Below, piece after piece: positions 36,904-61,821 of a DNA stretch of 64,000 bases. Numbering within the stretch: the stretch's first letter is position 1; every line of letters starts with the position of its first letter. Position numbers and translations under genes: made by a program. This stretch comes from Chara braunii. Its lineage: Eukaryota; Plantae; Charophyceae. Location of the stretch: assembly GCA_003427395.1 (NCBI GenBank), contig BFEA01000036.1:3849747-3913746 (forward strand). Reading direction: 5' to 3'. The notes under the pieces were generated by a model. It was not told the origin of the DNA and did no database searches. It was given only the letters and a program-made list of their open reading frames with translations.

Positions 36904-36997
36904 CATTTCTCGATTTATGGGTGTCATCCTTGCGCAGGGGCCATGCGTATTTTCTTTCTCTGTGTCGTTCCAGTTTTTAACTGATGTCCCGACGGAC
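36904..36997 (-). pseudogene. U6: U6 snRNA-derived copy A
   Basis: Minus strand reads GTCCGTCGGGACATCAGTTAAAAACTGGAACGACACAGAGAAAGAAAATACGCATGGCCCCTGCGCAAGGATGACACCCATAAATCGAGAAATG. This matches plant U6. The AGC triad is mutated and there is no T-run terminator; a purine tract follows. Confidence 0.9.
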
Positions 36998-37884
36998 AAG
37001 ATGAGAGTTCATCGTTTAGGCGCTTAAGAGGTCAGTTTCACGTAGACGGGAGTCATATGCTCTTTCTGTAAGTCTCTGAGAAAGGCGAGCTGGCGACTGC
37101 CAGCTGCTTCTCGACCAATCAGCTGCCCCCCCCCCGCACCAGCCGCACGAATCACATACCCGCCAATTCGCATGACCGTTTGGGTTCTTTGAGACTTCAA
37201 GAAAATTGAATAAATCGAGGAAGAATTGGAAGACAAGTGGTTTCAACGGAGAGCGAAGCACGTGTGGGACCAAATAGTTTGTTCCTCTACATGCCACTTA
37301 GATACTTGTCTGTTTTCTCCTTGTTGCCACTGATACTTCTCTGTTTTCTCCTTGTCGATCAGCCACTGGATTTGAACGTACGTTTATTCGTTTCCTTCTG
37401 CAGGTATTTATTGTGGCTTCCCTTTGTTTACTCATCTCGCGGGCTTCTGGCGAGTGTATCACTGTATCGACCTTCTTTGCCACTAGTCTTGCTCCCACAG
37501 TCCTACTCTTGCTCCCTTTACTTAAAACCACACGTCGGCTATCATATCTTATAGAAGCCAAAGGCCATAGCTTTTGGTGAAAGAGAATCGAATAGAAGAT
37601 AACTTAAGCTTAGCTCCGAGATTCGGAGGCAAGAGTTTTGCCGTCCTTCACGTGATACTAGAAGTCTGGAAAGAACCAAGCAACGCAGTTGGGGTGGAGT
37701 CGATGCCCGGTCTTGTATCGCTGCTTACGCAGTATGCATCTCAGGGAAGTACCCTCGAGTCTCGCTTCTCGAGTAAGAGATGTCATCATGTCAGTTCACG
37801 GAGTCGCAAACGCAGTGAGTCGTCGAGAGGACGGATCAAGGATGTACATCTCAACCCTCCAGGTTGGGAATAGGTTTGCTCCGT

Positions 37885-38250
37885 TCAAACCTCGGTTACG
37901 TATAATCTGTTATGCTTGTCTTTTGAGGAGAGCCTTGACGTTTGGAGGTTAAGTCAAGGTTATGGAGTCAGTTGATCCTCAGGCTCATTACGATTGAATC
38001 GGATTGATGCTCTCAGCGGCTAAGGGGCCATGGTTGCCAGAGGGGATGTCTATACTCTGCTGCAAACCTCGGTTACATATTAACCGTTATGCTTGTCTTT
38101 TGAGGAGGGCCTTGACGTTTGGAGGTTAACTCAAGGTTATGGAGTCAGACTCAGTCAGTTGAACCTCAGGCTCATTACGATTGAATCGGATTGATGCTCG
38201 CAGCGGCTAAAGGGGCCATGGTTGCTAGAGGGGATGTCTATACTCTGCTG
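37885..38250. repeat. Tandem duplication of ~180 bp
   Basis: CAAACCTCGGTTAC...GGGATGTCTATACTCTGCTG occurs twice (37886-38062, 38063-38249). Confidence 0.85.
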
Positions 38251-38373
38251 ACTCTGTCTCTGCACACCCAAGTGACCCAACACTGTTGTTCCGACTGTGT
38301 CTGGGGGTATATTACGCACATTCAGGCTTGTTTTCTAGGTCTGACCCCTCTGAGCCTCTGATGTGTGCATACG

Positions 38374-38484
38374 CCGTCACCCGAATAGAACGCCCGGTCA
38401 TTATGGCTGTATTTGATGGAACTTCCGGTCTAGATAGTAGATACAGCTATACTGACCGGGCGTTCTATTCGGGTGAAGACGGTA
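38374..38484. mobile_element. Tiny hairpin MITE (Tc1/pogo-like TACCGT terminus)
   Basis: Perfect 24-bp inverted repeat 38377-38400/38453-38476, extendable to ~39 bp. A related degenerate copy lies at 38841-38958. Confidence 0.65.
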
Positions 38485-39607
38485 GATGGGGCAGATGAAG
38501 GATGAACCTCCTGTCTCCCTGAATGCGAGTCAAATGGGGGGGGGTCTTAGGTCTAGCTTGGCCTCGCTGGCTGGCTTGCTAGCAGACTAGAACTGTGAGC
38601 GGGCTTCTATCCTTGCCTTGCTGACGCTCAGCCGTCTGCAGAGTCTGCATAAGTTCTTCACAGTGTACCTGGTCACTATGTTTCCTCTTTCAGAGGAGAC
38701 TCAGGAGAGAGGCTTGCAAAGCAGACTACTTGCCAGGGCTTGGTGCATTCCCAGTTTGGCTCCCTGCCCTGCAGGCTGCAGCTTTGTGGTCTCCTGGCAA
38801 GTTTCGCTGTTAATGTGTCTTGCCCGGCCCATCCCAAGGCTACCGTCTTCACCGGAAGAGAAGAACGGTCGGTCGGCCGCATTTGGGGCAGCTTTCAGTG
38901 TAAATTCAGTCTAGAATCTAGATACAACGATTATTTCGGGGCGTTCTTTTTATTCGGGAGCCCAGTCACTGCCAAATTGCCATTCTTTATGGCTGGATCT
39001 CTTCCTGGCCGCCACCTGTCCGAAGTCCGCCATGCTTGATATCTCTCTGCATCCCCTTTGTTAAGTACTTGACTTGCAACTCGCAGCTTGCTTACTCTGT
39101 TGCCTGCTTAGGCTGCTTCGTTTTTCGTCCCCGCCACCTCATTCACTGTTTTCTAGTCTTTGACATGCATTTTAGCTTGGATTCTGACCACATACCTTGG
39201 TATGACAATCTTGCTCCCTCCGTTCTTTCTGCAGGAGCTGCTACCCCTTGGGCCCTCGGGGTCCCAGGCGATACACAGTGAGAAGCACAGACCTTGTTCA
39301 TCTATATTTAGCAAGAGAAGCTGCCTGCTTTTCTTGGATTGACGTTTTGTGTTTCGCAGGCTCTTGCTATGCTTGGCAGGCTCTCGTCTTGCCCATTTTC
39401 TTTGCCTGCAGCTATCTTCTTGGCCATCCTGCTGTATTCTCGGCTGGCTATCTTCATGGGCTACATTGCTGTTTGCCGTATCATGTCATGCCATGCCATC
39501 TATCGTCCTTCTTCTTCTTCTTCTTCTTCTTCTTCTTCTTCTTCTTCTTCTTCTTTTCTTTGACATGATGCCGTCTATCTTTCTTCTTCTTCTTTTTTTT
39601 TTTTTAC

Positions 39608-39709
39608 TGGACCATTTCTCGATTTATGCTTGTCATCCTTACTTGCGCGAGGGCCATGCTAATCTTCGGTCTTTGTATCGTTCCAATTTTAACGGATGTC
39701 CCGATGGAC
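39608..39709 (-). pseudogene. U6: U6 snRNA-derived copy B (full-length retrocopy with A tail)
   Basis: Minus strand reads GTCCATCGGGACATCCGTTAAAATTGGAACGATACAAAGACCGAAGATTAGCATGGCCCTCGCGCAAGTAAGGATGACAAGCATAAATCGAGAAATGGTCCA, followed by A13 and (GAA)n. Flanking ~25-bp imperfect direct repeats at 39557-39581 and 39710-39734. Confidence 0.92.
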
Positions 39710-40698
39710 TCTTTGACAAATTGACATCTATCTTAATTGCTAGTTTCAGACATTTAGTGCGAGGCTTCCTTAATAATCCTTATAAACCTGCAGAGGGCTC
39801 TTTCTGCCCTTCTTTCACTGATTAGCGCTCCGTCTTCCTGAATCTTCAGTGTGCTCTATTCACTTTTTCCTTAAAGCTTTCTGGTTTTGTTTGCTGACAC
39901 TGTCAGTCTCGCAGACTCTCGCTTAATGACAACTGTGCTTTTGTCAGGACTCAGAATATCTTGCTGCTTATCTTGCTCGTGAAATTACTGTCCGTCCTTC
40001 ACAGTTGTGCAGCTAGCCGTCAGGCCCAGCACTTCTCACTCTGCACTTTGCTACTAGGTCTTTTGTATGCTGGGGTATGTATTTCGCTGTTCCGTAGCTC
40101 ATAAGAACTAGGAGAGAGACTGCACCAGACTCGCAGAAAGGAGTTTTAGTCTGTTGCGCGCAGCTTGGAGATTGCATTCAAGTTGATTCAACCATTGCTG
40201 CACAGAGGCACGAAGGGGAAATGACCGTGGAGGATAGATGAACCCAGCTCATCACGGACCTCTCAAGCTGCTGCAGTTCTCCTGTGGTTTCTTAGGTCTT
40301 CACATTGACATCACTCAATTACTAATCACATACGATTACGACGACAGACTGCGGACAGTCATATGACGTATGTCACCCCTCTTTCGAGAATTATGATCCA
40401 CCACTTAGTTACAGACAAATGGTTTCCACTCTTAACAAATGGAAACCAGACGACGGGATTAGAGAGAAGTTCAGACAGCCCATAAGGAGCAGTCATTCCT
40501 TCTGGGGTTGTCCTCTCGACTCCTCTGTTCCAGGACCAACACATGGTCCTTCTCGATAGCTCGCCAGTGCCCCCACTGCACTGCAGTGGCTGCGCAATGT
40601 GACAATGTTTCTCCCCTGGCGGCTGGCCCGTTGGTTTCCAGACACTCTCGCGAGTCGTGAGTCGTGAGTCGTGACTCGTCAATTGCATCACTTCAGCT

Positions 40699-40912
40699 TA
40701 AACCACCAGTACTTCCAAGGCACTTTTCTCCTGGGCTGGAAACGACCTGTGCGCGAGAGATGGTTAAAGAAATGAACCAGCACGGGCCACCTTCTGGCCC
40801 GTGCCGCCAGCCATTTTGCACCGGAGGCCGAGGCCCGAAAGTCGCGGGGGTATACGCATTGCGCGATTGATATCGTCCCACGGAAACATACTGATGCACA
40901 GTGGTGGTTTAA
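40699..40912. mobile_element. TTAA-flanked MITE (ACCACCAGT terminus)
   Basis: TTAAACCACCAGTACTTCC...AGTGGTGGTTTAA. Same terminus as the 42059-42226 copy. Confidence 0.55.
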
Positions 40913-42039
40913 TCTCTAGATGGCAGAGGCTGTAGAGTTCAGACTCTGTCAGACTGACTTACGGTTGTCCTGGACTCCTGGGCGGCTGGGCCCTGGCCAT
41001 AGCAGCAATGCAGACTGTGTATCCAATCCTTGTGCCAGCCGCAACGACGACTCAACGAGGGTTGGATGGACTGCACGTGCATGTCCAAAAATGACGAAGG
41101 CCTTGGGAATGCACAGTTTCATGTCGTAGGGGGGGTAGAGCTTTTGTGGAGAGGCTGGGCGGGTGAGGAGATCACCAGTGGTGGTTTTGAGAGTAGGAGG
41201 GATGGGAATGGGGGTGGAAAGAAAAAGGAGAACCCTTTTCTTTTCTTTTGTATTTTACCTCCATGCCTGCATTGACGTGTAGTCCACTGACTGCCAGTGA
41301 CTGGTTGAGCGCGACACGTCAGACTCTCCCAGATTCCCACTGCTATGATCCTACCTCCTTCCACCTTGAGTGTTCCCCACACCTTCACGCCGTCGAATAT
41401 AACTGCCATAATGATCCTTAGGCTAGCTCCTTCCACCTTGAGTGTCCCCCACACCTTCACGCAGTGGAATAGAACACGGAGCAGCAGCTGTACAGTGAAT
41501 AGAACACAGTGTAGTGCCCCTCCATGAGAATTAGGACAACTTTAAGCATCACTACCACACTATTATGGCGTCTGCTATCACAAGGGAAAGATGGCAGCAG
41601 CTGTTCAGTGAGTTATCCTTGTATTGTTGGCTCCCTAAACAGCAGACCTGTAGCAGTCTCCATCATGTCCTTTCCTGTAAGCGGAAATGGAAGAGTTCAA
41701 GAGTGAGTCAAAGTAACTTCTCAATACCCAAAAGTAGCTGCCCCTTATTTTATCAAGGTCCTAATACTACAAATGAACCTCATCACAGGAAGCCCCTATA
41801 GCCTATAGGCTATAGCTAGCCGAGGAGTCAAACGCAGTAGATCCCGCTAGTCTGACCATACTGGTCTTGTCTTCATTATGGTTGAGTCGGGGTTGAGTTG
41901 GCCTGACCTTTTTTTTTTTTTTTTGTTTTAATCTAGCTAGATTTGAGTGTGCCCACCTCTTTTTCCCCAAACTACCCAGGGTTGAGTTATCCCCACTCTT
42001 TTTTTCAACTTCATATTATTGCCGCTGCTCAGTATATAA

Positions 42040-42610
42040 GCTGAGTGTGGACAAAAGTTTAGACCATCAGTACTTCCAAAAGTCACGGCTTGCATGCTGC
42101 AACCCATCGCTACAGTGACGCGATGTTTCCACTCGACGGAAGTTATCCCACCGTCCCCAGGCCCATTCATCCCGGCAAATTGCGGCATGCTTGCTGCCGC
42201 GACTTTTGGAAGTACTGGTGGTTTAAGCTTGCGAATTTGCCCTTGCATGAGCACATTTCGCACTGGATTTTACTCCTTTCGTGGCTATCTACAATACTCA
42301 TGCCAGCCTGGTTTTCTGGTTGAGTGCGGACAAACGTTTAGACCACCAGTACTTCCTGAAGTTGCAGCTTGCGTGCTGCCACCGTTTGCTACGGTGACAC
42401 GATGTTTCCACTTGTCAATGAATGAATTTATCCCAGCACCCCAGGTTTGTTCAGCCCATCACGCCGCGGCGTGCATGCTGCCATGACTTCCGGAAGTACT
42501 GGTGATTCACGCTGAGAATTTGTCCTTGCATGAGCACATTTACTGCTGGATTGAAGTGGACTCTACTCCTCTCCTGGCTATCTACGTTACACATGCCAGT
42601 CCACTTTTCT
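42040..42610. repeat. Tandem duplication (~280 bp x2), each unit containing a TTAA-type MITE
   Basis: Units start TGAGTGTGGACAAA and TGAGTGCGGACAAA. Each has inverted ACCAYCAGTACTTCC...GGAAGTACTGGTG arms. Confidence 0.8.
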
Positions 42611-44000
42611 CCAAGCTGTGGCATCGGCCTCACATTTTCACATAGTCACAGAGTCGCACAGATCTCATGGTACCATGACCGCTTGTGAGGTTCTTCAAGT
42701 CCTGATATGGTGTCTGACAGATACTTCCAAGTAAGCTAGGAGTCCTGATATAGTAAATCTGAGAAAGGAAGGACGGCCGAAGGTAGCACAGAGTCACAGG
42801 GTCAACCGTTGAGCCGCATAATCTCTATTCGATTGAGCGTAAGGGAAAATCAGTTTAAATCACTGCTTCAATGACACATCATTAGCCGGAAAACCACTTC
42901 TTTTTTTTTTCAATGTCACCACCACTATTTAGTGGTCGTCCCGTTCACCAAAAAAACACCAAATGAACGGCCTGTCACGTTCACGGGATCGGCACTGGTG
43001 GTTCATATACTTTAAAATGTTCAAATAAGATTTTGAAAAAAATATTTCGAACATTGAAAGTTGAAACTTTCATTCATAATATAGATAAGGAATTAATTTA
43101 AAGCCGCAAAGTTACAACATATTATTTTCCTATAGTTTTTTTGCTTTTGTTTTTGTTTTTTTTTGGGCTGGAGCTGCGTGGAACCCTCTTGGGGTCATGC
43201 CCGGCCGGGCACCTGGGCGTGTATCCAGGCACAAGTTGGGTGCCCAGGCGTGTGGAAAAACAGCCTAGCTGATTACCATAATCATTTGATTTTAGACGAG
43301 TCCGTTCCCTTTCTAAAATCCTAACTTACATGCGTACATAAACACACATACATTGATTGTCAAATAAAGGGTGCATTGTTTATCTTATGTATTATTTTCT
43401 ATTCAATTCATGCATGAAACAATCAAACTTTATTAATATGGATATCGATTGCTATGTATGAGAAATACAAAGATGGAGCACGCAACTTTCACTTCCTATC
43501 AATTGATAAATATGAAGCATTATACATGTTAATCTCTAGAAGTGGTTTCGTCTCTCTATGTGCAATGGAATGTATGTGTAAACGAGTGAGAGGGGAATAT
43601 CAAGAAAAGAATCGAGAGAGAAAGAAAATAGAGTGAAGAAAATCTTTGACCACCGAGAGTCCATCAACGTATCGAGTTTATGATTTATTTATTGTTATGG
43701 AGATGGTAAAGAAATAGTGGGGAGATAAGAGTAGTCTTTACAAGTGTATGAGTACTTCTGCATTTACTTAATGTAAATGTAGGCTGCAATCTTTGGTTAT
43801 GAGTAGCACCCTGTAAGCGTACGCCAAGCGTATGCATACGTATTCCGACACACACATGTATACCTAAAAACGAGCATATGTATACGTAAACAAAACGAAG
43901 CAAAACACATCTCAAAAAAACGTATGTGTGCAGATTAATAATGCAAACAACTTTAATCCAAGAGTCATCCTGAAATTCTTAGCCCAAATCCACTTAAAAA

Positions 44001-44274
44001 CTAGGCTACCAGCCGGGCCGCCCGGGTCCCGGTGGCCAGCCCGTGCAAGGACCAGGGAAGGTCCCAGCAAAACAAAAAAAAAATAAAAAAAATCCGGAAA
44101 ACAACTATGTTATGCCAAAGAATAAACTGAACAACTTTTGCCTCAGGGTCACATCGAAATTCTGCACCAAATTTAGAAAAAAAATAAAATTTAAAAATAA
44201 TTGTTTTATTTTTATTTTTTTAATTGTTTTTGGCCCGGCCCGGCAAGTGACCCCGGGCCTTTCTGGTAGCCTAG
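44001..44274. mobile_element. hAT-type MITE, CTAGGCTACC family
   Basis: Perfect 12-bp TIR CTAGGCTACCAG and 8-bp TSD CTTAAAAA. Confidence 0.9.
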
Positions 44275-44892: not shown

Positions 44893-45084
44893 GCGGTAAC
44901 TTCAGTAGAGTAAAAAAAACGAGTTATAACTGCACTATGTGGCAAGATAGAGTTTGCAATTGCACTTCGAACACACCTGACCAGAAAGTTGGGTTGTATA
45001 CATTGCCCAAACTGCAAGTTGAAACTGTTTCTTGACCCATAGTGTGATTATAACTCGTTTGTTTTACCCCCGCGTAGTTTCCCC
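44893..45084. mobile_element. Mutator-type MITE
   Basis: Long imperfect TIRs starting with G and a perfect 9-bp TSD TTTAAATAA. Confidence 0.8.
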
Positions 45085-47305: not shown

Positions 47306-47815
47306 CTATGAAACACCTGCGGACGCGTCCAAGGGGTCGAGATCGGAAGGCGGCCATATTCATGTCCTCATCCGCGGCTGGCCTTGGCCGCGCCGCAGAC
47401 ATGAATTTACACAAATTTTCCTGAATTAAATAATGGGTAAAAAATATATAGATATATATATGGGGTTGTAGGGATTTTCAAGCCCTACAACCCCATTTTT
47501 TTTTTTTTGGAAACAAATAATTTTTTTGAATTATAAAAAATAAAAAACAGAAAAGGTGGAGAAGAGAAATAAAAAAATAATTAATATATATATATATTTT
47601 TTAATGGATGGGTGTGTGTGTGTGTGTGAACGTGTGTGTGTGTCTGCGTGTGCGTGTGCTCCCACGCATGTGTGTGTGTGTGTGTGTGTGTGTGNNNNNN
47701 NNNNNNNNNNNNNNNNNNNNNNNNNNNNNNNNNNNNNNNNNNNNNNNNNNNNNNNNNNNNNNNNNNNNNNNNNNNNNNNNNNNNNNNNNAGAGAGAGAGA
47801 GAGAGAGAGAGAGGG

Positions 47816-47848
<33 letters not shown>

Positions 47849-47854
47849 CCCACG

Positions 47855-47944
<90 letters not shown>

Positions 47945-48054
47945 CGCGCGCGCGTGGTGCGTGGCGGGGGGGTGGGGCGACCCCTCCCCCACCAATCAAT
48001 CAATCAATCAACAAAAAAATAAAGCAAAATCGATTGAATGAATGAATGAATCAG

Positions 48055-48090
<36 letters not shown>

Positions 48091-48163
48091 CAACAACAAA
48101 AAAGAGCAAAATGGAATGAATGAATCAATCAATCAACGGGGGGGGGGTGCGACTCCGCCCCAC

Positions 48164-48198
<35 letters not shown>

Positions 48199-48493: not shown

Positions 48494-49170
48494 GGAGTAA
48501 CTACCTGCAGACGAGTTGGCTTCAATAGATTCGGGGTTACCTACGGTAGCACACCTGGGGGTGCAAGTAATTGGAACTCGTTAGGAGATGCACACACGCA
48601 TATCCGTAAGACGGTCACATGGCTGTAGGGTCGGCTCGCGATGTAGATGTCAACGTTGGAAAACTGGTTCTCTTTGGTAGGCTAGGAATCCCCATAGGCC
48701 GTCTAGGCAACTAGATGGATGTGGGTTCAAGGCTAGACTGCCAGGCCAGGCATCTAACCTCTACAACAACCACCTTTCTGGGAAAAACAAAAAGTTAAAA
48801 AATCCTAAAAAACACTTTTTTTCTTTTTTTTTACCAACCATTTTGTGAAATTAATAAAAAATGTCAAGTTTAACCAAATGGCAGTTAGTAGGACTTTCCC
48901 GGATGTATGTGACCACTTTTCTGGGTGTGCCTGGATACACTCGACCACAATTACGTGCAGAAAGAAGTGGAAAAAAACACAATTGAAAGCATGCCCTAAC
49001 CTTGGTGATGATTCCACAAATGTGGCCAGGCGCAAAACGATGGGTTGAAACTGCAAGGACTATTCTCCACTTTACTTTTTTTTTTTTTTAATATATATGC
49101 GGGCGGCTCCCGGTTTTGAGTGAGGCATCACCGGCCTTTCTCTTTGTGTCTTCTAATAACATGGATTCAA

Positions 49171-49251
49171 GCTACTTGGGGACATCCGTTAAAATTGGAA
49201 CGATACAAAGAAAGAAGATTAGCATGGCCCCTCCACAAGGATGACATACAT
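49171..49251 (+). pseudogene. U6: U6 snRNA-derived copy C (3'-truncated, A-rich tail)
   Basis: GGGGACATCCGTTAAAATTGGAACGATACAAAGAAAGAAGATTAGCATGGCCCCTCCACAAGGATGACATACAT, followed by (AAAT)n. Confidence 0.9.
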
Positions 49252-49893
49252 TTAAAAATAAATAAATAAATAAACTCTAGGGTATAGACGAGAGGTCAAA
49301 TCCATGGGTGTTAGGTTTGTGGTTTAGGCCCTTTAGGGTTTAGAATAGGGGCCAAAGGATTTCTAGGGTCGAGGTCCCTCTAGCAAAGAGGGTTGGATTT
49401 AACACCTGAATCTGGACAAGTTCCATGGTGAGATGCAGAAAAGCAGATCAATCCTGGTTTTCTACACCTTGCCGCATAACACGGCCATCTTCAGGGCACT
49501 CATTCCAATGCTCACTATGGGCCCATATTGTTTGTTTTTGAAAATTTCGACGAATTTCGCACCGAAATTGTTGGCGAAAACGACGAATATTTAGCCCCCC
49601 GTTAACTATCTCTCAGACTAAGGAGCGTCACTCAAGTAAGTTAGTTTAAAAGTTTTAAACACCTATGAAAATCACAACGTTCTCCGATTTGCACATTGCT
49701 CAAATATACAAGACACAACAAGTCACACCATGCGGATAGAGAAAGGGAAGGAGGACAAGGAGGGGAGGAAGAAGAAGAAGAAAGACAAGAAGAAAGGGAG
49801 AAGAAAAAAGACAAACATGTGTCCCGAACTCGACTTCATTTGAAAATAAAAACATGAAGATGAAGCGAAAACCGAAATTCTTGCATGCGTTAT

Positions 49894-49940
49894 AGCCCGA
49901 CCGGTTTCACCTGGTCTGCCAACTAGGATCATTAGAGGCC
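49894..49940 (-). ncRNA. Minimal type I hammerhead ribozyme motif, 3' repeat copy (core mutated)
   Basis: GGCCU-CUAAUGA-U-CCUAG-loop-CCAGG-U-GAAA-CCG-GUC-GGGCU, with palindromic ACCGGU stem III. Confidence 0.75.
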
Positions 49941-52900
49941 TAAGTCGGTTTGAAAAACTACTGTTTGTATAGGCCTATATACTACCAAGAACTAGTAGAG
50001 CAGTCATTAGTCAACTTACAGTCCGTAGCCTGATCAATTCGTCACGTTCACATTATCACCCAAACGTCGAAGGTTTAAAACCGTACTGCCAAAACACTAA
50101 AAACAAAACAGTGAATTCTATAGACTGTCGATATCCAAAAAATGCAAAAAATGACAGATCACGGGATCAAACTTCGACGACCAGATTAACCAACTAAAAA
50201 CTCTAACTACGAAAGTCAAAAGTGAAGGAAAAAACAGAACGTTGCTGAAGGTACAGACCCCCTCGTCATATTTATGTTACTACCCAAGCGTCAACGTTCA
50301 TAATCTTACTCCCGAAACACCAAAACTGAACCGTAGATTGTAGAAACCACCGACATTCAAAAAACACCTTCTTGAAGATACAAACCTCTTAGTTTCATTC
50401 ATGTTATTGCCCAGACGTCGAGAGTTTGGAACCTTACCACCGAAACACGATAACCGAACCATGGATTCTAGAAACCGCCAATATATAAAAGAAGCAACTA
50501 ACAAGTCTCTAAGTCGAACTTCCAAAAGGGTTATTACCATAACCAACTAGGTTTCTAAATATAAAAAAACAAACAAAACAGAAACGAAAAACAGCAATCA
50601 AAACCTAGCCACACATCAAAAACTACCTGGTCAGCAAACATTCTGCAGAGATACACAGCCCGAACCCACAACACGGATGGTACAAAACAGACCCGCTAAT
50701 ACGAAGGTCTCAGAAAACGACCCCAATTCGTCAGCACCGGTAACCATTCCTTCCATCGACCTGTCAATTTTCTGAAATTTTTTATCACAACTTGATCAAA
50801 GAAGTCATTGGGATAACCCCTTTTCCATAGTTTGTGCTTCAAAGAGAAGAGAAAGGGAAAGACCATCCCATCAATGGATGAATAAGTTTTAGCTCGGTGA
50901 AAGAAAGAGGTGGCCACAACCATCTTCTGTTGACGGTTGGTAAAAGACACATAATCCTGGATGCTCTGAAACGCAAGCTTACCATTCACATCTTCCCTTT
51001 GATTTTTAGTGACTGGGAAGAACATTACACTTGTCTTCCCTTCGAAAACTTTGAGAATACAGTCGAGAAAATCTCAACAGCAACCATCGTTAGTCTTCTC
51101 TAGAACTAAATTGTTATTGTAACAGTGACTGAAGGACTCAATGAGTTGTAACCCCTTCGCGCAAGAATCCTTATCCTCTTTCCTACAAATCACTAAAAAA
51201 AGGACATCGTCGACTGATCTAATTCCGTGGAAAAGCTTCTAATCTCCATATAAACTGGACAAAAATACAAACTCATTGAAGACACATAACAAGCAAGCCA
51301 ACGCCGGACTGGATGACTTTCCAATTGGAATTTCAATTTCCGGACGCAGTAGCCGACCAGCCGCCTTAACGTAGTTATGACCAAGTTCGAAACAGATGAA
51401 GTCAACGATCAAAGTAAGTGGAATACACTTCCATCCTATTTCATTTTGCCCTCTTTGCAGTTTGACACCCCTGCCTTGCTTCTTAACCAAGACTCCTGTC
51501 ACACCACATTCCAGCCAGAAAAACACTACTCATTCTAACTCCTTCATGATCGAATTGTGCCGCAAATATGAAAACATCTCCTTGATATCGAAGGAGGTCC
51601 CCACAATCTCATCATTCTTTGTCAACCGCTTATTGACAGATTGGATAGCAGCCAACAAACCATCAGCAGATCGAAGATTCAAGTTCGAACCTTTCGGGAG
51701 AGACTATAATAAAGTATTAAGACAACGAGAAATCACCTTACCACCAACAGCAGAACACTTAGGATACAAGGGGCAAATCGACCTCCAACATGTGACATCC
51801 TTATGCTTAGGAATCCAGTAGGCTTCACCAAACTTACCCTGCTTCTTCGATGCACCAACCCGGAGTAACCCACGTTTGACATACTCATCCTTGCAGTTGC
51901 TCAACACAGCCTCGTCACTATCCTGACACAAAGTGAAAGATGGTTTCCCAAAGAAAAGTTTCTGCATACCATCTTCGTAAATCAACAGACAAGAGACAAA
52001 GATGTCATCAGAGTTATGATCTATTATACTACACACAAGACCGCTCAGAAGAGAACGAAAGGAGAAAACTTCATCTTCCCATACAAAGTTGGAGTGTGGG
52101 TCGTATATCCTCACGAGACAAAAGACCAGGATCTACAGTCAGTAAGGAGGGATGAGATTGAAAGGCTGGGAGCAGTTGCAAACGTAGATTACGTTGTCTG
52201 TTCGTGTGTTTCCTCGGAGCAGTTACAAACGTAGATTACAAAACGCACGATCCTTGGAAGGTCGTACAACGTTCTTGGAATTTTGCATGAACGGTGGAAA
52301 TAAAGAGTCAACGTCATTGATCCGAAAAGCGACATGACCGTTAGTACGGGGGAGGGAACCCTCCGAGGAAACACACGAACAGACAACGTAACCCAACCTC
52401 GAAAACTTTCAAAAATTGTGAACAAGGTCACCCACAAACAATTTTTTGCGGCACACTACTCCCATCATCGAGTCACATGCGGTGAATGAGCATCCCTTTC
52501 AATTGTTCCAACGCTGTGGAATGTTTAAGCTTGCAACAACATTCGCACACAACCTCCTGATCTTTGCTTTGCAGATATGATCATCATAAATAATTTTGAC
52601 ATCCAATCTCTTCCTAACTTGGATCCTAAATCTGGTCAGGATATGGTGAGATAGAAGGCATCGTGAACGAAATCGGGATCGCTTCTCACTAAATGTACGA
52701 ACAACTGTATAAGCAACAATCGAACCATCAAAACTCCAAAGCTTAAGGTCACAACGACTCACAGGATTGTTCAAAAAAATAGATAGCGGGGCTTTCAAAA
52801 ACAACGAACGACTCAAGAAGGACACGACAGGATCAAACAAAAGGGTAACACCACTCTTAATCCAACCAAGAGTATGGCGCAACTCTTTTTTACCAAATTC

Positions 52901-55440
52901 AGAACAAACCAAGCTACCTCCGAACAGCGTTCAAGGGATTTTTCAGCGGTCAACCAACCGACTGCCGCCAGCACATGTGACCACGACACAATGCTTAACC
53001 TGAGTGCAACAGTGTTGAAGGATTTTGATCAAACTGACAGCAGAGAGGCCCTCGGTGGAATGAAGCACACAAACAGACCCACCAACGTTGACCGAAATGC
53101 AAGGACCAATCACCTGGTTTCTGGCCACTCGCCGTTTCTCCCCAAGTCTTTCTCTCAACCCCTTCCTACATCTCCTTGTCCTCTTTGGCTTGTCCCGAGT
53201 ATTTAGAGTAGGCGATAACAACCGAATGAAGAATTTATCAGTCTCTAACACATCATCAGTGGAACATCAACAGATCGGTATGATGACGTCTGTATGAGTA
53301 CCGCATTGGTATAATTTTTTGTTTCGTAGTTCCCCCACGACAACTTTTGACTAACAAGATCTGAAGATCGATAGACGTGTTCCCTCCAACGTGAGTAAAG
53401 ATTCCGTTGAGTACTGCCTATACAAAGATGTCGAGACCATGACGAAGCCAAAGCATAAATCACAGACTCTTCCCACTCATCAACCCTTTCAACGTGAGAT
53501 TGTGAGAGACAATGAAAAAAGAAATCGCAAAGCTTCGCACCCCAGGATATTTCTCCACATACAATAAAACCACAGACAACCAGAGAAAAGAGAAGGTTGA
53601 CAGTCTTACATCGCAAGAAATCACGAGACAGAGATTAGCAATTCGCCACAGTAGTGTCGCGTCCGGGCGTGACCCTAAGAAGTAGCAGAGTCATGCCCGT
53701 CACTCGGTTCTGAATTGTTCTCACCATCGTCAGTCACTTTGACCACGGAATCGTCCTTACCTTTATCCTTGTCACGACTACCTTCTTCAAAAACCCTTCG
53801 TTGTTCGTCTTTATGCTACTTCCTCCTTTGTCGGATCCAAAGTAGTGTAATCAACACCCTCCTTGTCGCGGATTCCCATGATTTCATCATTTTTCAGAAG
53901 ACAAAGTTTCTTCCGTTCCTCACGAAGATGGGCATCGCGGACGTTAATCCGAGCAACCGGAGTAGCCATAGTGATACCCTTGTCCTTCCTTGCAAAGGTC
54001 CTGTTGCATCGTCCATCCTGGTTTTCAGAATGGCACCCCGGGTTTTTCTTCCAGTCTTCAAACGCGCCATGACCTCCATAAGACGATCAACCTCCTCCTC
54101 ATTCTGCTGTCAAGCATTGACTTCTCGTAGCCGCATGACCTTCAACAATTCCACTTCCTGTTGGTGTCGTTCGACTATCCATTTAATCTGCTGATTAACC
54201 ACACATGGAGAAACCGTCGTAGTGGCCTTGGCCTTGAGTCTTGCCTCAGTAGTGGGTGTACCACCAAATTGGCACCAATAGCCACGTTGCCTCGCTTGTT
54301 CCCCGGTCTCAAAGCCGTGCACCTCCATACCTCGACAGTGGCCTCCGCTTGTTCACACTGCCTCTGTAGCGCTAGAATGACATCTTCCAAAGAAGCGAGC
54401 CTCTTATCCATAGCTACCTTGACCTCGGCTTGCTCCCTTCGAAGTCGAGCAAGTTCTTCAGCCTCACTGAGATGCCTGCTGACTGTGGCGGAAGTGCTGG
54501 TATCGTCACGACTTTTCAATCGCTCCACCCCAGCACGCAGCTTTGAGACCTCGTTGTTCTCGCTAGACTTCTGCTTGCCCTTTAGATCGCGTTGCAAGTT
54601 GCAACTCCTCGATCTGCAGTTTTAAGTGACTGATAACGCCATGGTCCCCAGTCTTCCTTCCATTAACAGCCTCGCACACCTTGTCCAGTTTGGTCGACAT
54701 TTCCCTGTGCATTTGTGATTGAAACTCTCACGTTGTTTTTATCCTTCTCTCTTCGTTCTTCTTCTTCCCATTCCCTCTGTTTACGCTCATCTTCTTCTCG
54801 TTGTGCCCGCTCCCTTGCTTCCTCCGCCTCATGCTTACTATTAATCTTGCCGACGATCTCTTCTAAGGTGGAGACCCTCCTACCCAGTTGAGATCCGCTA
54901 CCAGTGCCGTTGTACTGATTAGGGTATTACGGAACTATCGTACCCACACCAGCAGCAGGGACAGTGAGAAGAGGTGTGGCAGGCACAGTCGCATTGCTAG
55001 CAGATGGTTGTACGTCGTTTAACCTACGATCCGGTAGAGGACAGTATCTAGAGATATTACCGGGTTGTCCGCAGTTATAACAAGATCGAACACAGGCACG
55101 TTCGGGTTACCGTTGGACGCCATCGTTCAAATAGTCGAAGCCACACAGCCGTAGTATCACCTCTACGTCGGTTACACCGCGTGATAAAGTAAGTTAGCTT
55201 AAAAGCTTTAAACACCGATGAAAATCACAACGTTCTCCTCCGATATGCACATTGCTCAAATATCAAGGAGACAACAAGTCACACCATGCAGGTAGAGAAA
55301 GGGAAGGGGGACAAGGAGGGGAGGAAGAAGAAGAAGAAGAAGAAGAGAAGAAAGAAGAAAAAACAGTGTTCCAAACGCGACTTCATTCGAAAGTAAAAAC
55401 ATGAACATCAAGCGGAAACCGAACTTCCCGCAGGCGTTGT

Positions 55441-55487
55441 AGCCCTACCCGTTTCACCTGGCACGCCAACCAGGATCATCAGGGGCC
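55441..55487 (-). ncRNA. Minimal type I hammerhead ribozyme motif, 5' repeat copy
   Basis: GGCCC-CUGAUGA-U-CCUGG-UUGGCGUG-CCAGG-U-GAAA-C-GG-GUA-GGGCU. Core intact; stems I and II pair. Confidence 0.85.
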
Positions 55488-56511
55488 TAAGTGCGTTTGC
55501 AAGACTACTGTTTGTATAGGCCTATATACTACCAAGAACAGTAAGAACTAGTAGAGCAGTCACTAGTCAACGCACAGTCCGTCATGTTCACATTATCACC
55601 CAAACGTCGAAGGTTCAAAACCTCACTGCCAAAACACTAAAAACAAAACAGTGAATTCTAGAAACCACCGATATCCAAAAAAAGCAAAAAATGACAGATC
55701 ACGGGATCGAACTTCGACGCCTAGAGCAACCAACTAAAAACTCTAAGTACGAAAGTCAAAAGGAAACGAAAAAACAGGGACGTTCCTGAAGGTACGGACC
55801 CCCTCGTCAATGAGTTGTCATATTCATGTTACTACCCAAGCGTCAACGTTCGAAACCTTACTGCCAAAACACCAAAACCGAACCGTAGATTGTAGAAACC
55901 ACCGACGTTCAAAAAGCACGTTCTTGAAGATACAGACCTCTTCGTCCCATTCATGTTATTGCCCAGACGTTGAGAGTTCGAAACCTTATCACTGAAACAC
56001 TAGAACCGAACCATGGATTCTAGAAACCACCGATATATAAAAGTAACAGCTGGCAAGTCTCCAAATCGAACTTCGAAAAGGGTTATTACCATAACCAACT
56101 AGGCTTCTAAATACAAGAAAACAAACAAAACAGAAACGAAAAACAGCAATCAAAACCTCTCAACACATCAAAAACTACCTGACCAGCAAACACTCTGCAG
56201 AGATACAGAGCCTGAACCCACAACACGGACTGTACAAAACAGACCCCCTAATACGAGGGGGCTTTCCATCAAATTCCATGTTCTAGCGAAAGAGTCACGC
56301 TGGAGTGGTCAGACGAATGGATTTTACACAGCTCCGCTCCCCCGAACACGTGCTTCACATCAGGATTGGGCTATGTGGCCCTGGTTTGCAGAGGAGCGTT
56401 ATGGATGCCATCTGGTCAGCAAGAAACGCCAAAGTCTTCTGCAGTTCGGACACAGTGTTCCACACGCAAATCCAACTGATCCGTCAGCTATTCGCACAGA
56501 CTGGGAAAAAT

Positions 56512-57030
56512 GGGATAATTGGTATAAAGAGCCCACGCCAAAACCTTTTCGGTTTTGGCCGCCCAAAGTACGGCCGCTTGGTACTACCGGCCCAAACAAC
56601 TTTCCCCTGGGTCAGAGGCGCCTTCGCGCCGTGGCCACATCTCCCTGGGCCTGTTTTTACCGGTTCAAGAATTTTGCGCTGTTTCTGCGCCAGATTCATG
56701 AACCTGTAGGGCCCTTCTTTTTCAAAATCGCGTACGTGGGCCTCATTCTATACTTCAGCGTCACCACCGCCAGCCTCTTTTACATGAAAATGAATCTGGC
56801 GCTGTTATGCGCCAGATTCATGCTCCGGTAGGGCCCTTGGAGTGACGCGTGGGGTAGTACAGCGCCAGATTCATGTTCCGGAAGGGCCCTTGGAGTGACG
56901 CGTGGGCCTGTAGTACCCCACATGCAAGTCATTGGGCCGGTAGTACCAAACGGCTAAACTTTGGGCGGCCAAAACCGAAAAGGTTTTGGCGTGGGCGTTT
57001 CGTGGGCGCCTTCTACCTGCCGATTATCCC
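56512..57030. mobile_element. Mutator-type non-autonomous element
   Basis: GGGATAAT...ATTATCCC, with ~60-bp inner inverted arms (56534-56593/56932-56993), a perfect 9-bp TSD GGGAAAAAT, and internal GCGCCAGATTCATG repeats. Confidence 0.9.
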
Positions 57031-57744
57031 GGGAAAAATGCCGCTGGTCTAAGGGCAAGGGTCGTACTTGGTTTCTCAGAACTTGGACACTAGGGAACGG
57101 AATGGCCAAGGTGACATCAGAAGGTAAATTAAATTTTGGTCCTTGGCTTCAGGAAGGGGTGGCTGGCAGATTGAAGGACACCGGTTACACGACAGCCCGC
57201 CAGGGTTTTAGGAGTCCTCGTCCAGACACTTTAAGTTCCCGTCTTCCGGATCTGTTAACCAGGCATCAAAGTTCTTTACAGAATTTCAGAGAATGTATGA
57301 GCTAGAGGGTCTCGCTCCACCACTGTCCGCTATACAGAATTTCGGAGAGTTCGTGTATTATACACTGTCAGAGTACCAAAAAACGGAGATTTCGTGTATA
57401 GTCTGCTCCGTCGCTTCACTTACTATCCGCTATACAGCTCTCCAATTCCAGAGTTCACTACAAAACACCCTAAGAGCACTACAAGACAGCAGTTTGTCGG
57501 CCCAGACTCCAGGCGGACTATCCGATTTCGTGTTCGAACGGTGGCCTCCTTCGACCACCCTTCGCAGAGTATCCGAGTAACGACTTTTGCAGGCTGGGAA
57601 CTATACACAAATGTAGAGTGCGATCCAGTGGAGGGAGACCCAGACTCTACTAGTTTAGCTCGTCTTTACTTTGTGCTTCAAGTTTATTTTTTGAAAGCGT
57701 AGCAGCACGGAGCGCTGGACCCGGTTTTGATTTGTTTTATTTTA

Positions 57745-57928
57745 GAGAAAACAACGGCGCAGTCAGGGATTGAGTTTGTAATTGCACTTGAGGCAAAAAG
57801 GCCGGTAATGCTGAATGCATGTGACCTACGTTTCGGGTCCGGTGGGGTCGTGTGGGGGTGTGTTGTATTCGCGGAATTGCCTGAAGTGCAATTACAAACT
57901 GTTTTCGTGACTGCGCCGAAGTTACCCC
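57745..57928. mobile_element. Mutator-type MITE related to 44893-45084
   Basis: ~50-bp imperfect TIRs and a perfect 9-bp TSD TTTATTTTA. Confidence 0.85.
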
Positions 57929-58585
57929 TTTATTTTAATCAGTCGGTTTGGTCATCGAGCTAGGCTCGTAAGCGAAACTGGCTGAGGCTGCCAGCAGGAT
58001 AACTCCGGGTTGAATTGTGAGGTCCCCGGCCTCGTTCAACCGTGTTGTTTCTGTAATAAAATGTCCCGTCTTTGCAAAAAAGAGAAAAAAGAAAAAGAAA
58101 GAGTCACGCACGTGCTGCTCCCCACGAATAGATTGGAGCAATATTAAAAAAAAAAAAAAAAAAAGTCATTCTCAAATTGGCACATTGGTTCGGTAGTGGA
58201 GCGAGGCCCCAAGGGGTAATATCCAAAGATGACGAATATCGACAGCCAGTATGGAAGTGTGACTTCGGCCTGGGCCCTGGAAGGGACAACAAGGCGTCCT
58301 TTGAAGTGGGTATCTGGATGGGAGGGATACCCACCCAGTAGCTATCGACCAGCGAAGTGACTCTCCGTAATTTTTTTTATTTTTTTTATTTTTTTCAGGC
58401 GGGTTACCAAAATTATTGAATGAATGTTAATAATTGTAATCACTCAAAAAAAAAAAAAAAAAAAAAAAGCAGCGCACACGTGTCTGCCACGTGCCATCGT
58501 GTACTCGGTAGCCATGGCAACACCGCAGAGCAATCTTCAGGGGAGGTCCACGAGGAGGCACGCAGCTTTGCCAAACGAACATCAG

Positions 58586-58945
58586 TCCTCCTCCTCCTCC
58601 TCCTCCTCCTCCTCCTCCTCCTCCTCCTGCCCCACTCCTCCTCCTTGTCCTGCCCCGGTTGCTGCATCTACTTACTCCTCTTCTTTAGCGTCACCGCCAT
58701 CGCCGTTTCTATCCCCGTCCTCTCCTTCGTGATGATCTTTAATTCCTCCTCTTCTCTGGCCTCCTCCGTCTCCAACCCCGTCGACGACCTCTGATTGCCC
58801 CCAGCTATACCATCTACACCATCGCCACCCAAGTTTTCTTCTTCTTCTTCTTCTTCTTCTTCTTCTTCTTCTTCGTTTCTTCTTCTTCTTCTTCTTCTTC
58901 TTCTTCTTCTTCTTCTTCTTCTTCTTCTTCTTCTTCTTCTTCTTC
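58586..58945. repeat. (CCT)n and long (CTT)n microsatellites
   Basis: Directly visible at 58586-58628 and 58837-58945. Confidence 0.95.
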
Positions 58946-59227
58946 GTCGTCTACTTCTTCGTCTACTTCTTCTTGCTCCTTGTGCGTTTTCTCTTTTTTT
59001 CTCTGTTTTCTCAAAATTTTCTCTGTTTTATTGCCTCGTTTGGCAGTTGCTCTTTCCGCGCAGACCATTGAGCACCCAGACTCGCATCAGCCGGATACCG
59101 TCGAGTCTGGTCAGAGGCCAAGGCACAGCTCTCCCCGTGGGCCGCGAAAAATGATAGGCTACGCTCCGCAAGGGATTGTAAATTGCATCTCCTGCCCGGC
59201 TTGTCATCACGTTGAGCCGAGGTGACC

Positions 59228-59261
<34 letters not shown>

Positions 59262-59520
59262 TTTCCTCTTGTTTTTAAGGAGAGGTGGTATCGAGCCCCC
59301 TGACACAAAAATAAAAGCGAACGCAACTGAATACCACCGACCAGTTGTTTTCACCAACGAGGACAGCTCAAAGCTTCTAAAATCCCGACGCTGTCCCGAC
59401 GCAGTCGCAATGAACTCTGACGCTTAGCCGCGGGGAAGATGCAACAGAACGCTCATCATTGGTTTACCTGACATCATCAAGAGACTCAACTCTTCTGACA
59501 CGACCGCTCGAACAACCAAC

Positions 59521-59604
<84 letters not shown>

Positions 59605-60253
59605 CGGAGGCATAACAGTCATTAGGTGGGAGCGGATTGCGCTGACAAGTAATTACGCATTCGTACCCGTGCAGACAATGGCACGTTTAATCGTACCTGC
59701 CAGCTGGCGACCGCTGGCGAGGATCCCGATTCCCGATGCTCAACGGGACGGCCACTACGGGTAATAAAGGGATGGAGGGGAAAGGAAAAAAAGAAGAAGA
59801 AGGCCAAGGGCAATATACACGGAGGAAGGCGTGCGCGAATTTATTATAGGCGCGACAGCGAGGGACCAGACCTCGTAGAGGGCCCTATACGTGAACCAAT
59901 CGTTTTTTCCCCTTTTTATTTAATAGTTGTGCCTTCCCGCCTGCATGGCTGTACGCAATTAAAAAAAATAAAAACGAGCGGAAAAAAAAATCAACAGTCA
60001 GTCGCCCTCTGCAGCAACGGGGAGCATCCATCGACAAAAAAAAAAGAAAAAGCTTCAAATTTTATTAAAAAACAAAAACAAAAAAAACACGCTCACTGAA
60101 GGTCGTGACTCGTGACACTAAGATCGGGGAACACTTGACCGAATCTAACGCTCGTTTTCTTTTTTCTTTTCTTTTTTTTTTTTCTTTTTTTTTAATTCTA
60201 TTACTCAGCACACGTTGCTTATTATGCAAACGAGCTACCCTTCCCCCCCCCCN

Positions 60254-60338
<85 letters not shown>

Positions 60339-60991
60339 CTGTGTGTGCCCGTCTGCTCCCCTCGCGTGCACACAACCACAGAGAGAGAAATACCACAATT
60401 ACATCGGTGTTTTCTCTCCCCCCCAAAAAAAGACGTTCTTGCTTATAAAATAAAGGCAACGAGAGCAAGCAACGACATCGGGGGTTTTCTCCCCCCCCCA
60501 AAAAAAAAAGACAAGAAAAACTCTATTTGGGGTCGTAGCAGCCGATGGCTCCGATCTATTCCTGTTTTTAAGCTAAAAAAAAAAAAAAAACAAGACATCG
60601 TGATGGAAAGCGACGATGTGCATTGAAATTTGCAACGATGTGTATGAAAGAGGAGTTGGAAAAAAAAAAGAAGAAGACAATGGCTCCGGTCTATTGGACA
60701 ATCACACCGAGTCCCGCGCTCCGTTGATAGCACACTCACACCTAAACGTTTCCGACTCAGTTCTGCTGGACGTTCTTCCAGTCAGATGCATCCAGCTGTG
60801 GCCGTAATTGCGGTCAGATACGTTTAGGAAAGTGCTACCTAGTTTGGGGCTGGCTTGATAACTCAGAACTTTTTTACTTTTTTTTTTTTTTAACCGATAA
60901 CTCAGAACTTGGTTGTGTTCGCACTGTTACTAAAACTTAAAAAAAAAAAAAAAAAAAACAACTACTCATGGCTCTCAGAGGAGACCTCTTT

Positions 60992-61180
60992 ACCCACGGG
61001 GGGAATGCCACACTAACATAGAGGATTGGACTGAGCGCCTGAACCTGGACGTGATGGAGGGCATGTGCAGAAAAAAGTGATTAATCTGCTCTTCTGCATC
61101 TCTGCTTAAAACGCATCCAGATTCAGGTGCTTAATCCAAATTGAATCCTCTTTGCCAGTGGAACCTGTTCAACCCCGAGG
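60992..61180. mobile_element. Hairpin MITE, AGAGGATTGGATTGAGCGCCTGAATCTGGA family
   Basis: Inverted arms at 61020-61050 and 61117-61152. Further single arms at 49365-49420, 63355-63411 and 63937-63992. No TSD was seen. Confidence 0.6.
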
Positions 61181-61644
61181 CGCCAGAAACGAGGGAGAAC
61201 TGCTCTCTGGGAAGCTAGACTAATTAGGCATCGACAGAGCGACTAAGGGCATACTCAGACTAGTACTTCTTGAACTGATCTTTGTCCGTAATTGCGGTCA
61301 GGTTCATATGTGTCTGGCCGTGGAAGCGGTCAGATACATTCAGGAAAGTCAGTCGTCTGAGCTGCTCTCCTCTCTGTATCAGAGTAATTCTAACAATTTG
61401 AAGAAGAGTCAGTCGAATGGGTTCTCGATTCTATTTCAGAGTGGAAACACAAGTTTAGTCCAGCGATTGCTCTGTGGTTTTGAACTGATCTTTGGGCCTA
61501 ATTGCGGTCAGGTTCATCTGGGTCTGGCCGTAGAAGCGGTCAGATACATTTAGGAATGTTTTCCTGTAAGTATCCCTTTACGAAGAGCTGCTCTCCTCTG
61601 TGAATCAAGGGACCACTGTCCCGAACAGAACACGTACGAGTGGG

Positions 61645-61676
<32 letters not shown>

Positions 61677-61686
61677 GTTCGTGTGA

Positions 61687-61821
61687 GTCCGTTGGGACGT
61701 CCGTTAGAATTGGAACGATACAGAGAACGATAAGATAATACCTCAAGGCCATCGCCCTTGAAAAAAAATAATAATAATAAAAAAAGAATACCATGGCCCC
61801 TGCGCAAGGGTGACACGCACA
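61687..61821 (+). pseudogene. U6: U6 snRNA-derived copy D, interrupted by a ~50-bp A-tailed insertion
   Basis: GTCCGTTGGGACGTCCGTTAGAATTGGAACGATACAGAGAACGATAAGATAATACC, then the insert, then AAGAATACCATGGCCCCTGCGCAAGGGTGACACGCACA. Confidence 0.88.

Follow-up and report, generated by a model that had tools for sequence, protein, structure and literature searches.

The window, a 64,000-nt stretch of Chara braunii contig BFEA01000036.1, contains four sequences related to U6 snRNA, which are referred to as copies A to D in their order along the window. Together with an assembly gap and a T-rich filler, they make up the following features.

36892-36998, (-) strand: copy A, a near full-length U6 retrocopy (Rfam score 55.9 bits, sequence, alignment)
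39557-39718, (-) strand: copy B with its insertion signature (Rfam score 55.2 bits, sequence, exact 9-nt flanking repeat)
47695-47789, no strand: assembly gap, an N run within a CA/GA microsatellite (from translations of the flanking repeat), between copies B and C and in no U6 copy
49164-49275, (+) strand: copy C, its 5' stem replaced or decayed (Rfam score 59.1 bits, sequence, alignment)
61687-61833, (+) strand: copy D, interrupted and 3'-truncated (sequence, motif matches, alignment after removal of the inner insert)
61818-61872, (+) strand: T-rich filler after copy D (23 nt, 61834-61856, read directly in the sequence)

All four copies score above the Rfam RF00026 gathering score of 44 bits, which we used as the threshold for U6 (C 59.1, A 55.9, B 55.2 and D 47.4 bits). 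The corresponding matches span 49164-49275(+) for copy C, 36892-36998(-) for copy A, 39601-39709(-) for copy B and 61744-61847(+) for copy D. Two U6 core motifs were found three to four times each in the window, whereas shuffled sequences lead to an expectation of zero. In the case of copy D, the 5' stem of the Rfam alignment is a hairpin that pairs by chance; the true U6 5' half lies at 61687-61726. The assembly gap touches no copy, so that continuity across it is irrelevant here, and the other N runs nearest to a copy (36103-36120 and 61987-62510) lie outside the copies as well.

According to the first-pass annotation, which was made from the sequence alone, three copies carry exactly four extra nucleotides directly after the ACAGAGA box and the fourth carries a larger insert. 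Both statements can be read directly from the sequence. Copy A has an intact ACAGAGA followed by AAGA (36953-36956). In copy B, the U6 part of which comprises 39601-39709, the box reads ACAAAGA and the insert CCGA (39666-39669), and copy C combines the same ACAAAGA with AAGA (49212-49215), in agreement with the earlier remark that this altered box is common to B and C. In copy D, an intact ACAGAGA in the U6 5' half is followed by ACGA (61727-61730) and then by further inserted sequence. A short 5' stem had also been ascribed to A, B and D. This stem, a 4-bp GTCC NNNG GGAC, is present in the three copies but is not specific to them, being the majority form genome-wide, with the loop TTCG; copy C has not kept it.

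Beyond the insert, each copy shows its own changes. Copy A has lost the AGC triad (AAATACGC where AGATTAGC is expected), its tail is decayed and rich in purines, and about 13% of its positions deviate from the family majority. Copy B contains a second 4-base insert (AGTA/GTAA) after GCGCAA at 39640-39643, and its tail (about 39566-39603) consists of 13 A's followed by GAA-rich repeats. In copy C AGATTAGC is intact, and the 3' third has decayed to an A/TAAA-rich tail. The U6 3' half of copy D extends from about 61785 to about 61824, stops at around U6 base 78 and has lost the AGC triad.

Copy B is bracketed by an exact 9-nt target-site duplication, TGTCAAAGA, at 39557-39565 and 39710-39718, the latter at a distance of 0 from U6 base 1. 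No target-site duplication of at least 7 nt was found for A, C and D, which would be older or rearranged copies. The flanks had been described as unrelated, and a self-BLAST of the window bears this out, as similarity between the copies ends at the U6 borders. The 5' part of copy B and its flank (39682-40200) were compared to a DNA contig from another run, which showed 0 differences. The start at U6 base 1, the unrelated flanks and the A-rich 3' tail agree with what is expected of LINE-mediated poly(A) snRNA processed pseudogenes.

For the genome-wide analysis, Chara braunii DNA contigs were matched at 80% likeness to a reference of 603 letters (39598-40200) comprising copy B and its unique flank. 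At least 6,586 contigs matched the U6 part. Depth was 14.9 over the unique flank compared to a summed depth of 37,000 to 1,020,000 over the U6 part; depth summed over contigs reflects copy number poorly and serves as a rough guide only, and as such it suggests a family of about 10^4 or more copies. The high local density of about 60 copies per Mb, remarked on earlier for the window, holds beyond it in order of magnitude. The borders of the family are sharp at the 5' side, where the matches of more than 500 contigs break off precisely at U6 base 1 (39709/39710) and the upstream consensus is unconserved (agreement 0.35). At the 3' end, the consensus of the loose ends reads AATTTTT followed by 23 or more A's.

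The 4-base insert (39668/39669) is found throughout the genome. It is read through at a depth of 99,400 compared to 350,000 at the ACAGAGA box, corresponding to about 28%. Among the DNA contigs matched to copy B, no other insert length at this site (+3, +5 or else) reached 5%, and neither did any entry for bases left out or put in. The commonest form, AAGA, is a clean tandem duplication of AGAA. At the insert, the first letter is A in 79% and the second letter in 56%, so that 21% and 44%, respectively, are non-majority letters, compared to 1-2% or less at neighbouring non-CpG positions. Furthermore, 151 contigs clip exactly at the insert site, and the consensus of their loose ends is the canonical junction. 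Copies with a canonical junction are at least as abundant as +4 copies, and a canonical U6 source therefore exists. The second insert of copy B is read through at a depth of about 6,000-7,600 and left out by only 40.6 of 11,556, which places the subgroup with two inserts inside the +4 group. In the alignment, the family majority +4 sequence retains ACAGAGA, AGC and the remaining core.

These data support the proposal of the first-pass annotation that the copies are not independent decays of ordinary U6 but descend from a variant source, because hundreds of contigs read a 4-base insert at one site, no other length reaches 5% and the subgroup with the second insert is nested. As to the nature of the source, either a SINE-like amplifying family or a non-canonical U6 had been suggested. 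Copy number, A-tails, the target-site duplication and the subfamilies are all in keeping with the SINE-like option. The non-canonical U6 is disfavoured because canonical-junction copies are at least as abundant and because the four window copies show further core damage and no gene features.

Taken together, we regard the four sequences as probable LINE-type U6 retrocopies (probability about 0.68) belonging to a very large Chara braunii family that derives from one or a few variant source genes. A Pol III transcript of U6, starting at base 1 and ending in the terminator U-run, would gain a 3' A-tail, and a LINE-type reverse transcriptase would insert a copy of the adenylated RNA at a chromosomal nick; an A-tail and a target-site duplication would mark the insertion. 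The resulting retrocopies would lack the upstream promoter and subsequently decay. A large subfamily (about one quarter of the family depth at the site) would have inherited the four extra bases from its source RNA, and they would not have been made for each copy. This source would be one or a few variant U6 genes released from splicing constraint, since with the insert ACAGAGA and AGC stand 9 nt apart instead of 5. The second 4-base insert would have been added in a nested subgroup, and A and D would have lost the AGC triad. Several observations count against this explanation. No source gene was seen, and a target-site duplication was found for copy B but not for A, C and D. Letters 1 and 2 of the insert vary much more than the adjacent positions do, which a single master would not predict, and all four copies in the window carry an insert at the site, compared to a depth-based share of about 28%.

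A true U6-derived SINE, in which Pol III would transcribe the retrocopies from promoter elements within U6 itself and the copies would become new sources, leading to nested subfamilies, seems to us an unlikely alternative. It draws on the very high copy number, the precise base-1 ends of more than 500 contigs, the A-tails and the nested diagnostic inserts; high copy number together with diagnostic subfamilies (at least 6,586 contigs, the +4 insert and the nested second insert) is one mark of a SINE, the defining one being transcription of the copies by Pol III from an internal promoter. In addition, a source can evidently do without the catalytic core, as A and D lack AGC. However, one or a few promoter-bearing variant genes explain the same data as well as a self-transcribing SINE does, copy B has no LINE-derived tail, and neither 5' nor 3' ends are discrete in the poly(A)+ RNA. 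No internal promoter is known to us from U6 genes of the plant lineage, and the study describing SINEU states that none had been reported for snRNA genes (Kojima, PMC4494074). In favour of the SINE, a human U6 variant with an internal promoter is on record (Tichelaar et al, cited in PMC5855946).

Alternatively, canonical U6 RNA could be the template and the four bases could arise afresh with every retroposition event, the reverse transcriptase stalling after GAAGA, adding about two untemplated bases and re-priming two bases back. This would place two variable letters exactly at the junction of the duplicated unit, where they are indeed observed and are more than 20 times as variable as their neighbours, and it would account for B and C being alike in ACAAAGA and unlike in their insert letters (CC and AA, respectively). 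We nevertheless consider it improbable, because the length is fixed at +4 without any other class of at least 5%, and because the second insert is nested within the +4 group. We know of no such behaviour of a reverse transcriptase at this site of U6.

We saw no sign that the +4 variant is a working U6, and judged from their sequences the four copies appear to be dead. The spacer between ACAGAGA and AGC, which is 5 nt in a functional U6 gene, comprises at least 9 nt in all four copies, and their cores are damaged either in the box (ACAAAGA in B and C) or by loss of AGC (A and D). A search of the whole window for the land-plant USE motif with up to one mismatch gave no hit; the consensus is that of land plants, and the motif of Chara may differ. 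A promoter with a directly adjoining T-run terminator was seen for none of the copies: copy B ends in an A-tail, copy A in a purine run, and C and D are 3'-decayed or truncated. RNA reads over the U6 part, which come from oligo-dT-selected RNA and cannot show a genuine snRNA, map to both strands, and 93-95% of them continue into unrelated flanks. A functional U6 gene would give a discrete RNA of about 100 nt; no discrete transcript ends, 5' or 3', were present in the poly(A)+ RNA reads of these oligo-dT runs. One further run labelled as possibly RNA (X8) has a depth profile parallel to that of the DNA run, at about 0.11 of its depth across all bins, and was therefore not used as evidence for expression.

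We see very little chance that Chara braunii expresses a second U6 class that enters spliceosomes with a 9-nt instead of a 5-nt ACAGAGA-AGC spacer, the +4 copies being ordinary pseudogenes of this working, non-canonical paralogue. Such a paralogue would be in line with the family majority +4 sequence, whose core, including ACAGAGA and AGC, is retained. The pattern of very uniform positions around the insert and two freely varying inserted letters could likewise result from selection on several constrained source genes with a free spacer. Against this, a canonical source must exist given the abundance of canonical-junction copies, the ACAGAGA-AGC spacing is part of the conserved catalytic core (PMC5855946), and the four window copies all lack the character of a gene. 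It is also at odds with a metagenome scan: among 241 million records, inserts of 1-8 bases at this position came up in one case, a +5 in an unrelated contig; this single case, which comes without a denominator, hints that such inserts are rare. Finally, independent slippage in each copy after insertion, to which the location within the purine run GAGAAGA might lend itself, or spread as passengers in LTR or other elements can hardly be reconciled with an identical length and site in hundreds of contigs, unrelated flanks of the four copies, family similarity ending exactly at U6 base 1 and the target-site duplication of copy B itself.

U6 retrocopies are known mainly from mammals, where they amount to a few hundred copies. 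The streptophyte alga Chara braunii appears to hold thousands to tens of thousands of them, with a large subfamily derived from a source with a core insert. If this is true, U6 would be one of the main retroposition templates in the Chara braunii genome, and the marker series of canonical, +4 and +4 with a second +4 would date the activity of the reverse transcriptase. It also raises the question of whether an externally promoted snRNA can turn into a self-propagating SINE. In practical terms, any snRNA annotation of this genome will be swamped by U6 copies, for which the +4 insert provides a simple filter.

In humans, snRNA pseudogenes extended by poly(A) and flanked by target-site duplications have been described as a class, and U6 yields 906 hits there with an identity of at least 90% (Doucet et al, 2015, PMC4476161). 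The Chara copies resemble these mammalian LINE-1 U6 pseudogenes in being full-length from base 1, in ending in a 3' A-tract, in having lost the upstream promoter, and in the template proposed, a 3'-adenylated snRNA recruited by a LINE reverse transcriptase; the variable target-site duplications of the class are seen here for copy B. They differ in number (at least 6,586 distinct contigs in a smaller genome), in the large subfamily with nested subgroups from a source with a catalytic-core insert, and in the host, a streptophyte alga. SINEU, with heads derived from U1 and U2 (Kojima, 2015, PMC4494074), is likewise an snRNA-derived non-autonomous retroposon, and for both the mode of transcription is uncertain. 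SINEU, which goes back to Pol II snRNAs, is a composite of snRNA head, body and LINE-related tail; copy B, in contrast, consists of U6 alone, with the 3' end of U6 and an A-tail. We found no report of a U6-derived SINE in the literature. The nested sets of canonical, +4 and +4 with a second +4 are reminiscent of the master-gene subfamilies of Alu, in which stepwise changes of the source are passed on; Alu, in contrast, has an internal Pol III promoter, and none is demonstrated for the Chara U6 copies.

Extra sequence at a fixed place in the U6 core is also found with Dada-U6 transposons and with the mRNA-type introns of fungal U6 genes. Dada-U6 targets bases 65-70 of U6 and duplicates 6 bp there, GCGCAA/GCGAAA; as a footprint, a 6-7 bp duplication of this motif would be expected. 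A Dada-U6 footprint was rejected, as the Chara insert is located directly after ACAGAGA with four bases duplicated, so that both target and duplication length differ. A spliceosomal intron or a remnant of reverse splicing was likewise set aside, four bases being far too few for an intron and the longer insert of copy D not starting with GT. CpG decay was discarded as a reason why the second insert letter varies, the matching change of the third letter being below 5%.

The surroundings of the copies were also searched. Pfam scans of 35 window ORFs revealed no transposon proteins near the copies except for a weak GIY-YIG match, and a homology query with a decayed reverse-transcriptase ORF gave 0 matches. 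When the reading frame that stays open through the +4 U6 was taken as a protein query, there was one match, which is fungal and unrelated. A 1939-aa ORF matched the window's own annotated protein only and had no paralogues in the homology query.

Two smaller sequence blocks accompany copy D. Within it, 40 nt (61743-61782) comprising a hairpin and a TAA/A-rich tail lie between imperfect repeats of about 10 nt (61732-61742 and 61783-61792), and from this flanking repeat we infer that the block is probably a later, secondary insertion. Downstream, the T-rich filler is bracketed by an exact 16-nt direct repeat, CACAGCATTCATTATT, at 61818-61833 and 61857-61872; it has the appearance of a tail-only retro-insertion on the opposite strand and not of a U6 terminator.

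In an Rfam scan of the window, the spliceosomal U6 snRNA (RF00026) was the one family to exceed its curated threshold, with four matches; a permissive scan added no further U6, and the two U6 core motifs had three to four matches each in the window versus none in shuffled sequence. Reading and aligning the four sites (copies A to D) bore out the extra bases that the first-pass annotation had described directly after the ACAGAGA box:

36892-36998 (-), copy A: ACAGAGA+AAGA (read and aligned)
39601-39709 (-), copy B: ACAAAGA+CCGA (read and aligned)
49164-49275 (+), copy C: ACAAAGA+AAGA (read and aligned)
61687-61833 (+), copy D: ACAGAGA+ACGA, then more sequence (read and aligned)

The shared insert is real. 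In a self-BLAST of the window, likeness between the copies ends at the U6 borders, so that their flanks are unrelated, as had been stated. A gap at 47695-47789, lying between copies B and C inside a CA/GA microsatellite, touches no U6 copy, and continuity across it is therefore irrelevant to the finding. The window holds ten N runs (2,256 bases altogether) and long GAA/CTT, CTG-like and CA/GA microsatellites at 39500-39590, 58420-59154 and 47531-48045.

Copy B is a textbook retrocopy, starting at U6 base 1, ending in A13 plus GAA repeats and bounded on both sides by an exact 9-nt duplication, which directly adjoins base 1. Copy A is older (about 13% from the family majority, tail purine-rich and decayed), and C has not kept the 5' stem, its 3' third having decayed to an A/TAAA-rich tract. 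Copy D was probably hit again after its own insertion: a 40-nt piece (hairpin plus TAA/A-rich tail) lies between imperfect 10-nt repeats just past the insert, and the U6 part ends near base 78. What Rfam pairs as the 5' stem of D is a hairpin formed by chance, the true 5' half being 61687-61726. Downstream of D, a 16-nt duplication encloses what looks like an insertion of a tail alone.

For the genome-wide analysis, four Chara braunii sets (one of DNA contigs, three of RNA) were compared at 80% likeness with 39598-40200, which holds copy B and roughly 490 nt of unique flank. Of the DNA contigs, 6,586 showed a match to the U6 part, where summed depth ran from 37,000 to 1,020,000 against 14.9 on the unique flank. 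Summed depth is not copy number, as the tool warns, and taken only as a rough order it suggests thousands to tens of thousands of copies; in human, 906 U6 hits at ≥90% identity have been counted (PMC4476161). The local density of about 60 per Mb noted earlier thus holds genome-wide in order of magnitude, its exact value being perhaps few-fold too high. In more than 500 contigs likeness ends exactly at U6 base 1, with an unconserved upstream consensus, and on the 3' side the loose ends agree on the natural AATTTTT and then 23 or more A's. Rebuilt from copy B and the majority letters of the DNA contig matches, the family majority is a plant-like U6 (4-bp 5' stem, TTCG loop, intact ACAGAGA and AGC, usual 3' part). 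The short 5' stem singled out by the first-pass annotation is therefore present but is the family norm rather than a mark of the window copies. About 3% of family depth carries ACAAAGA, the variant that B and C have in common. Over U6 bases 8-28 (39682-39702) summed DNA depth is 1.02 million versus about 350,000 elsewhere in U6, roughly threefold, so that many genomic pieces carry just that part.

Depth through all four inserted bases is 99,400 versus 350,000 at the ACAGAGA box, and the canonical junction, the same site without the insert, is the loose-end consensus of 151 contigs clipped exactly there; both forms are thus in high copy. In the DNA set no class leaving out or adding bases reaches 5% at the insert. 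Its first letter is A in 79% and its second in 56% (U6 strand, by depth), leaving 21% and 44% non-majority, and letters 3-4 (GA) have no variant at 5% or more. When letters 1-2 are AA, the insert amounts to a clean tandem duplication of AGAA, and it is across the boundary between the two duplicated units that the variable letters lie. For comparison, variation nearby is at most 1-2% at non-CpG positions and 5-14% at CpG ones. Several source genes, generation by the reverse transcriptase at each event or several independent origins may lie behind this variability; decay of CpG sites does not account for it. A second 4-base insert in B, after GCGCAA, is read through by a depth of about 6,000-7,600 with hardly any lacking it, and marks a subgroup nested inside the +4 group. 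All four window copies carry an insert at the site versus a depth-based share of about 28%; either dispersed single copies count for too little in the depth, or this region is richer in insert-bearing copies. A scan of 241 million metagenome records for 1-8 extra bases at this U6 site gave a single, unrelated match: metagenome contig VFSW01108213.1 (1931-1961, -) holds a eukaryotic U6-like sequence with five extra bases (ACAGA) at the insert site.

The exact 5' end, U-run and A-tail point to a single kind of template, an adenylated Pol III transcript. A properly initiated and terminated U6 RNA would have been 3'-adenylated and then have served as template for a reverse transcriptase of LINE type, as has been proposed for poly(A) snRNA pseudogenes in human (PMC4476161). 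With LINE-mediated pseudogenes of this kind the Chara copies share the start at base 1, the unrelated flanks and the A-rich 3' tail; a target-site duplication was found for B, and none of 7 nt or more for A, C or D. The copies fit neither a Dada-U6 footprint nor a U6 intron. Copies made in this way would lose the external promoter, and since the same insert recurs at hundreds of unrelated loci, it is implied to have been in the source RNA already, which supports the variant master proposed earlier. There is also a canonical source, since copies with the canonical junction are no less common. Most simply, the +4 copies would stem from one or a few variant U6 genes, still transcribed and freed from splicing constraint. 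The chief rival, plausible in itself, would be a self-transcribing SINE. One U6 variant of human has been described as having an internal promoter (PMC5855946); for snRNA genes in general none has been reported (PMC4494074). In the open full-text literature we found no report of a U6-derived SINE or of U6 amplification in Chara. The case is of moderate interest, chiefly for how extensively U6 has been retroposed in a genome of the plant lineage and for its clean subfamily marker.

A functional variant U6, the other option raised by the first-pass annotation, is now unlikely, since the window copies do not pass as working U6 genes: none is gene-like, because the spacer length is wrong in all four, the ACAGAGA box is mutated in B and C, and AGC is lost in A and D. 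The land-plant USE motif occurs nowhere in the window, although Chara's own may differ. In two raw, oligo-dT selected RNA runs, 540 and 1,272 reads matched, on both strands, and 93-95% of them continue into flanks that are unrelated. Neither discrete starts nor discrete ends are seen, the profile follows that of the DNA, and the reads represent read-through from many copies and not the snRNA. At 39670, poly(A)+ reads of RNA runs X5 and X6 clipped after ACAGAGA go on with a non-canonical consensus (AGGATAATTTG...CCCCTGCG), which is another expressed U6-derived variant.

The one clear gene of the window (23895-29648, +; GC 62%) encodes an annotated 1917-aa protein with no Pfam family, low-complexity in its N-terminal two thirds; the protein maps to record BFEA01000036.1 of NCBI assembly GCA_003427395.1 (C. 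braunii S276). Among the best 8,000 candidates scored in a homology search limited to the C-terminal 560 residues, there was no relative. A decayed Penelope-like retroelement (49634-56256, -) has broken ORFs between 1.09-kb direct repeats (49634-50704 and 55187-56256, 86% identical), and copy C lies about 360 nt outside the left repeat. Its GIY-YIG-like motif (53245-53616) is upstream of reverse-transcriptase-like motifs (about 51530-52114), the permuted order of green-lineage elements according to a paper (PMC8557442) in which Chara braunii is mentioned.
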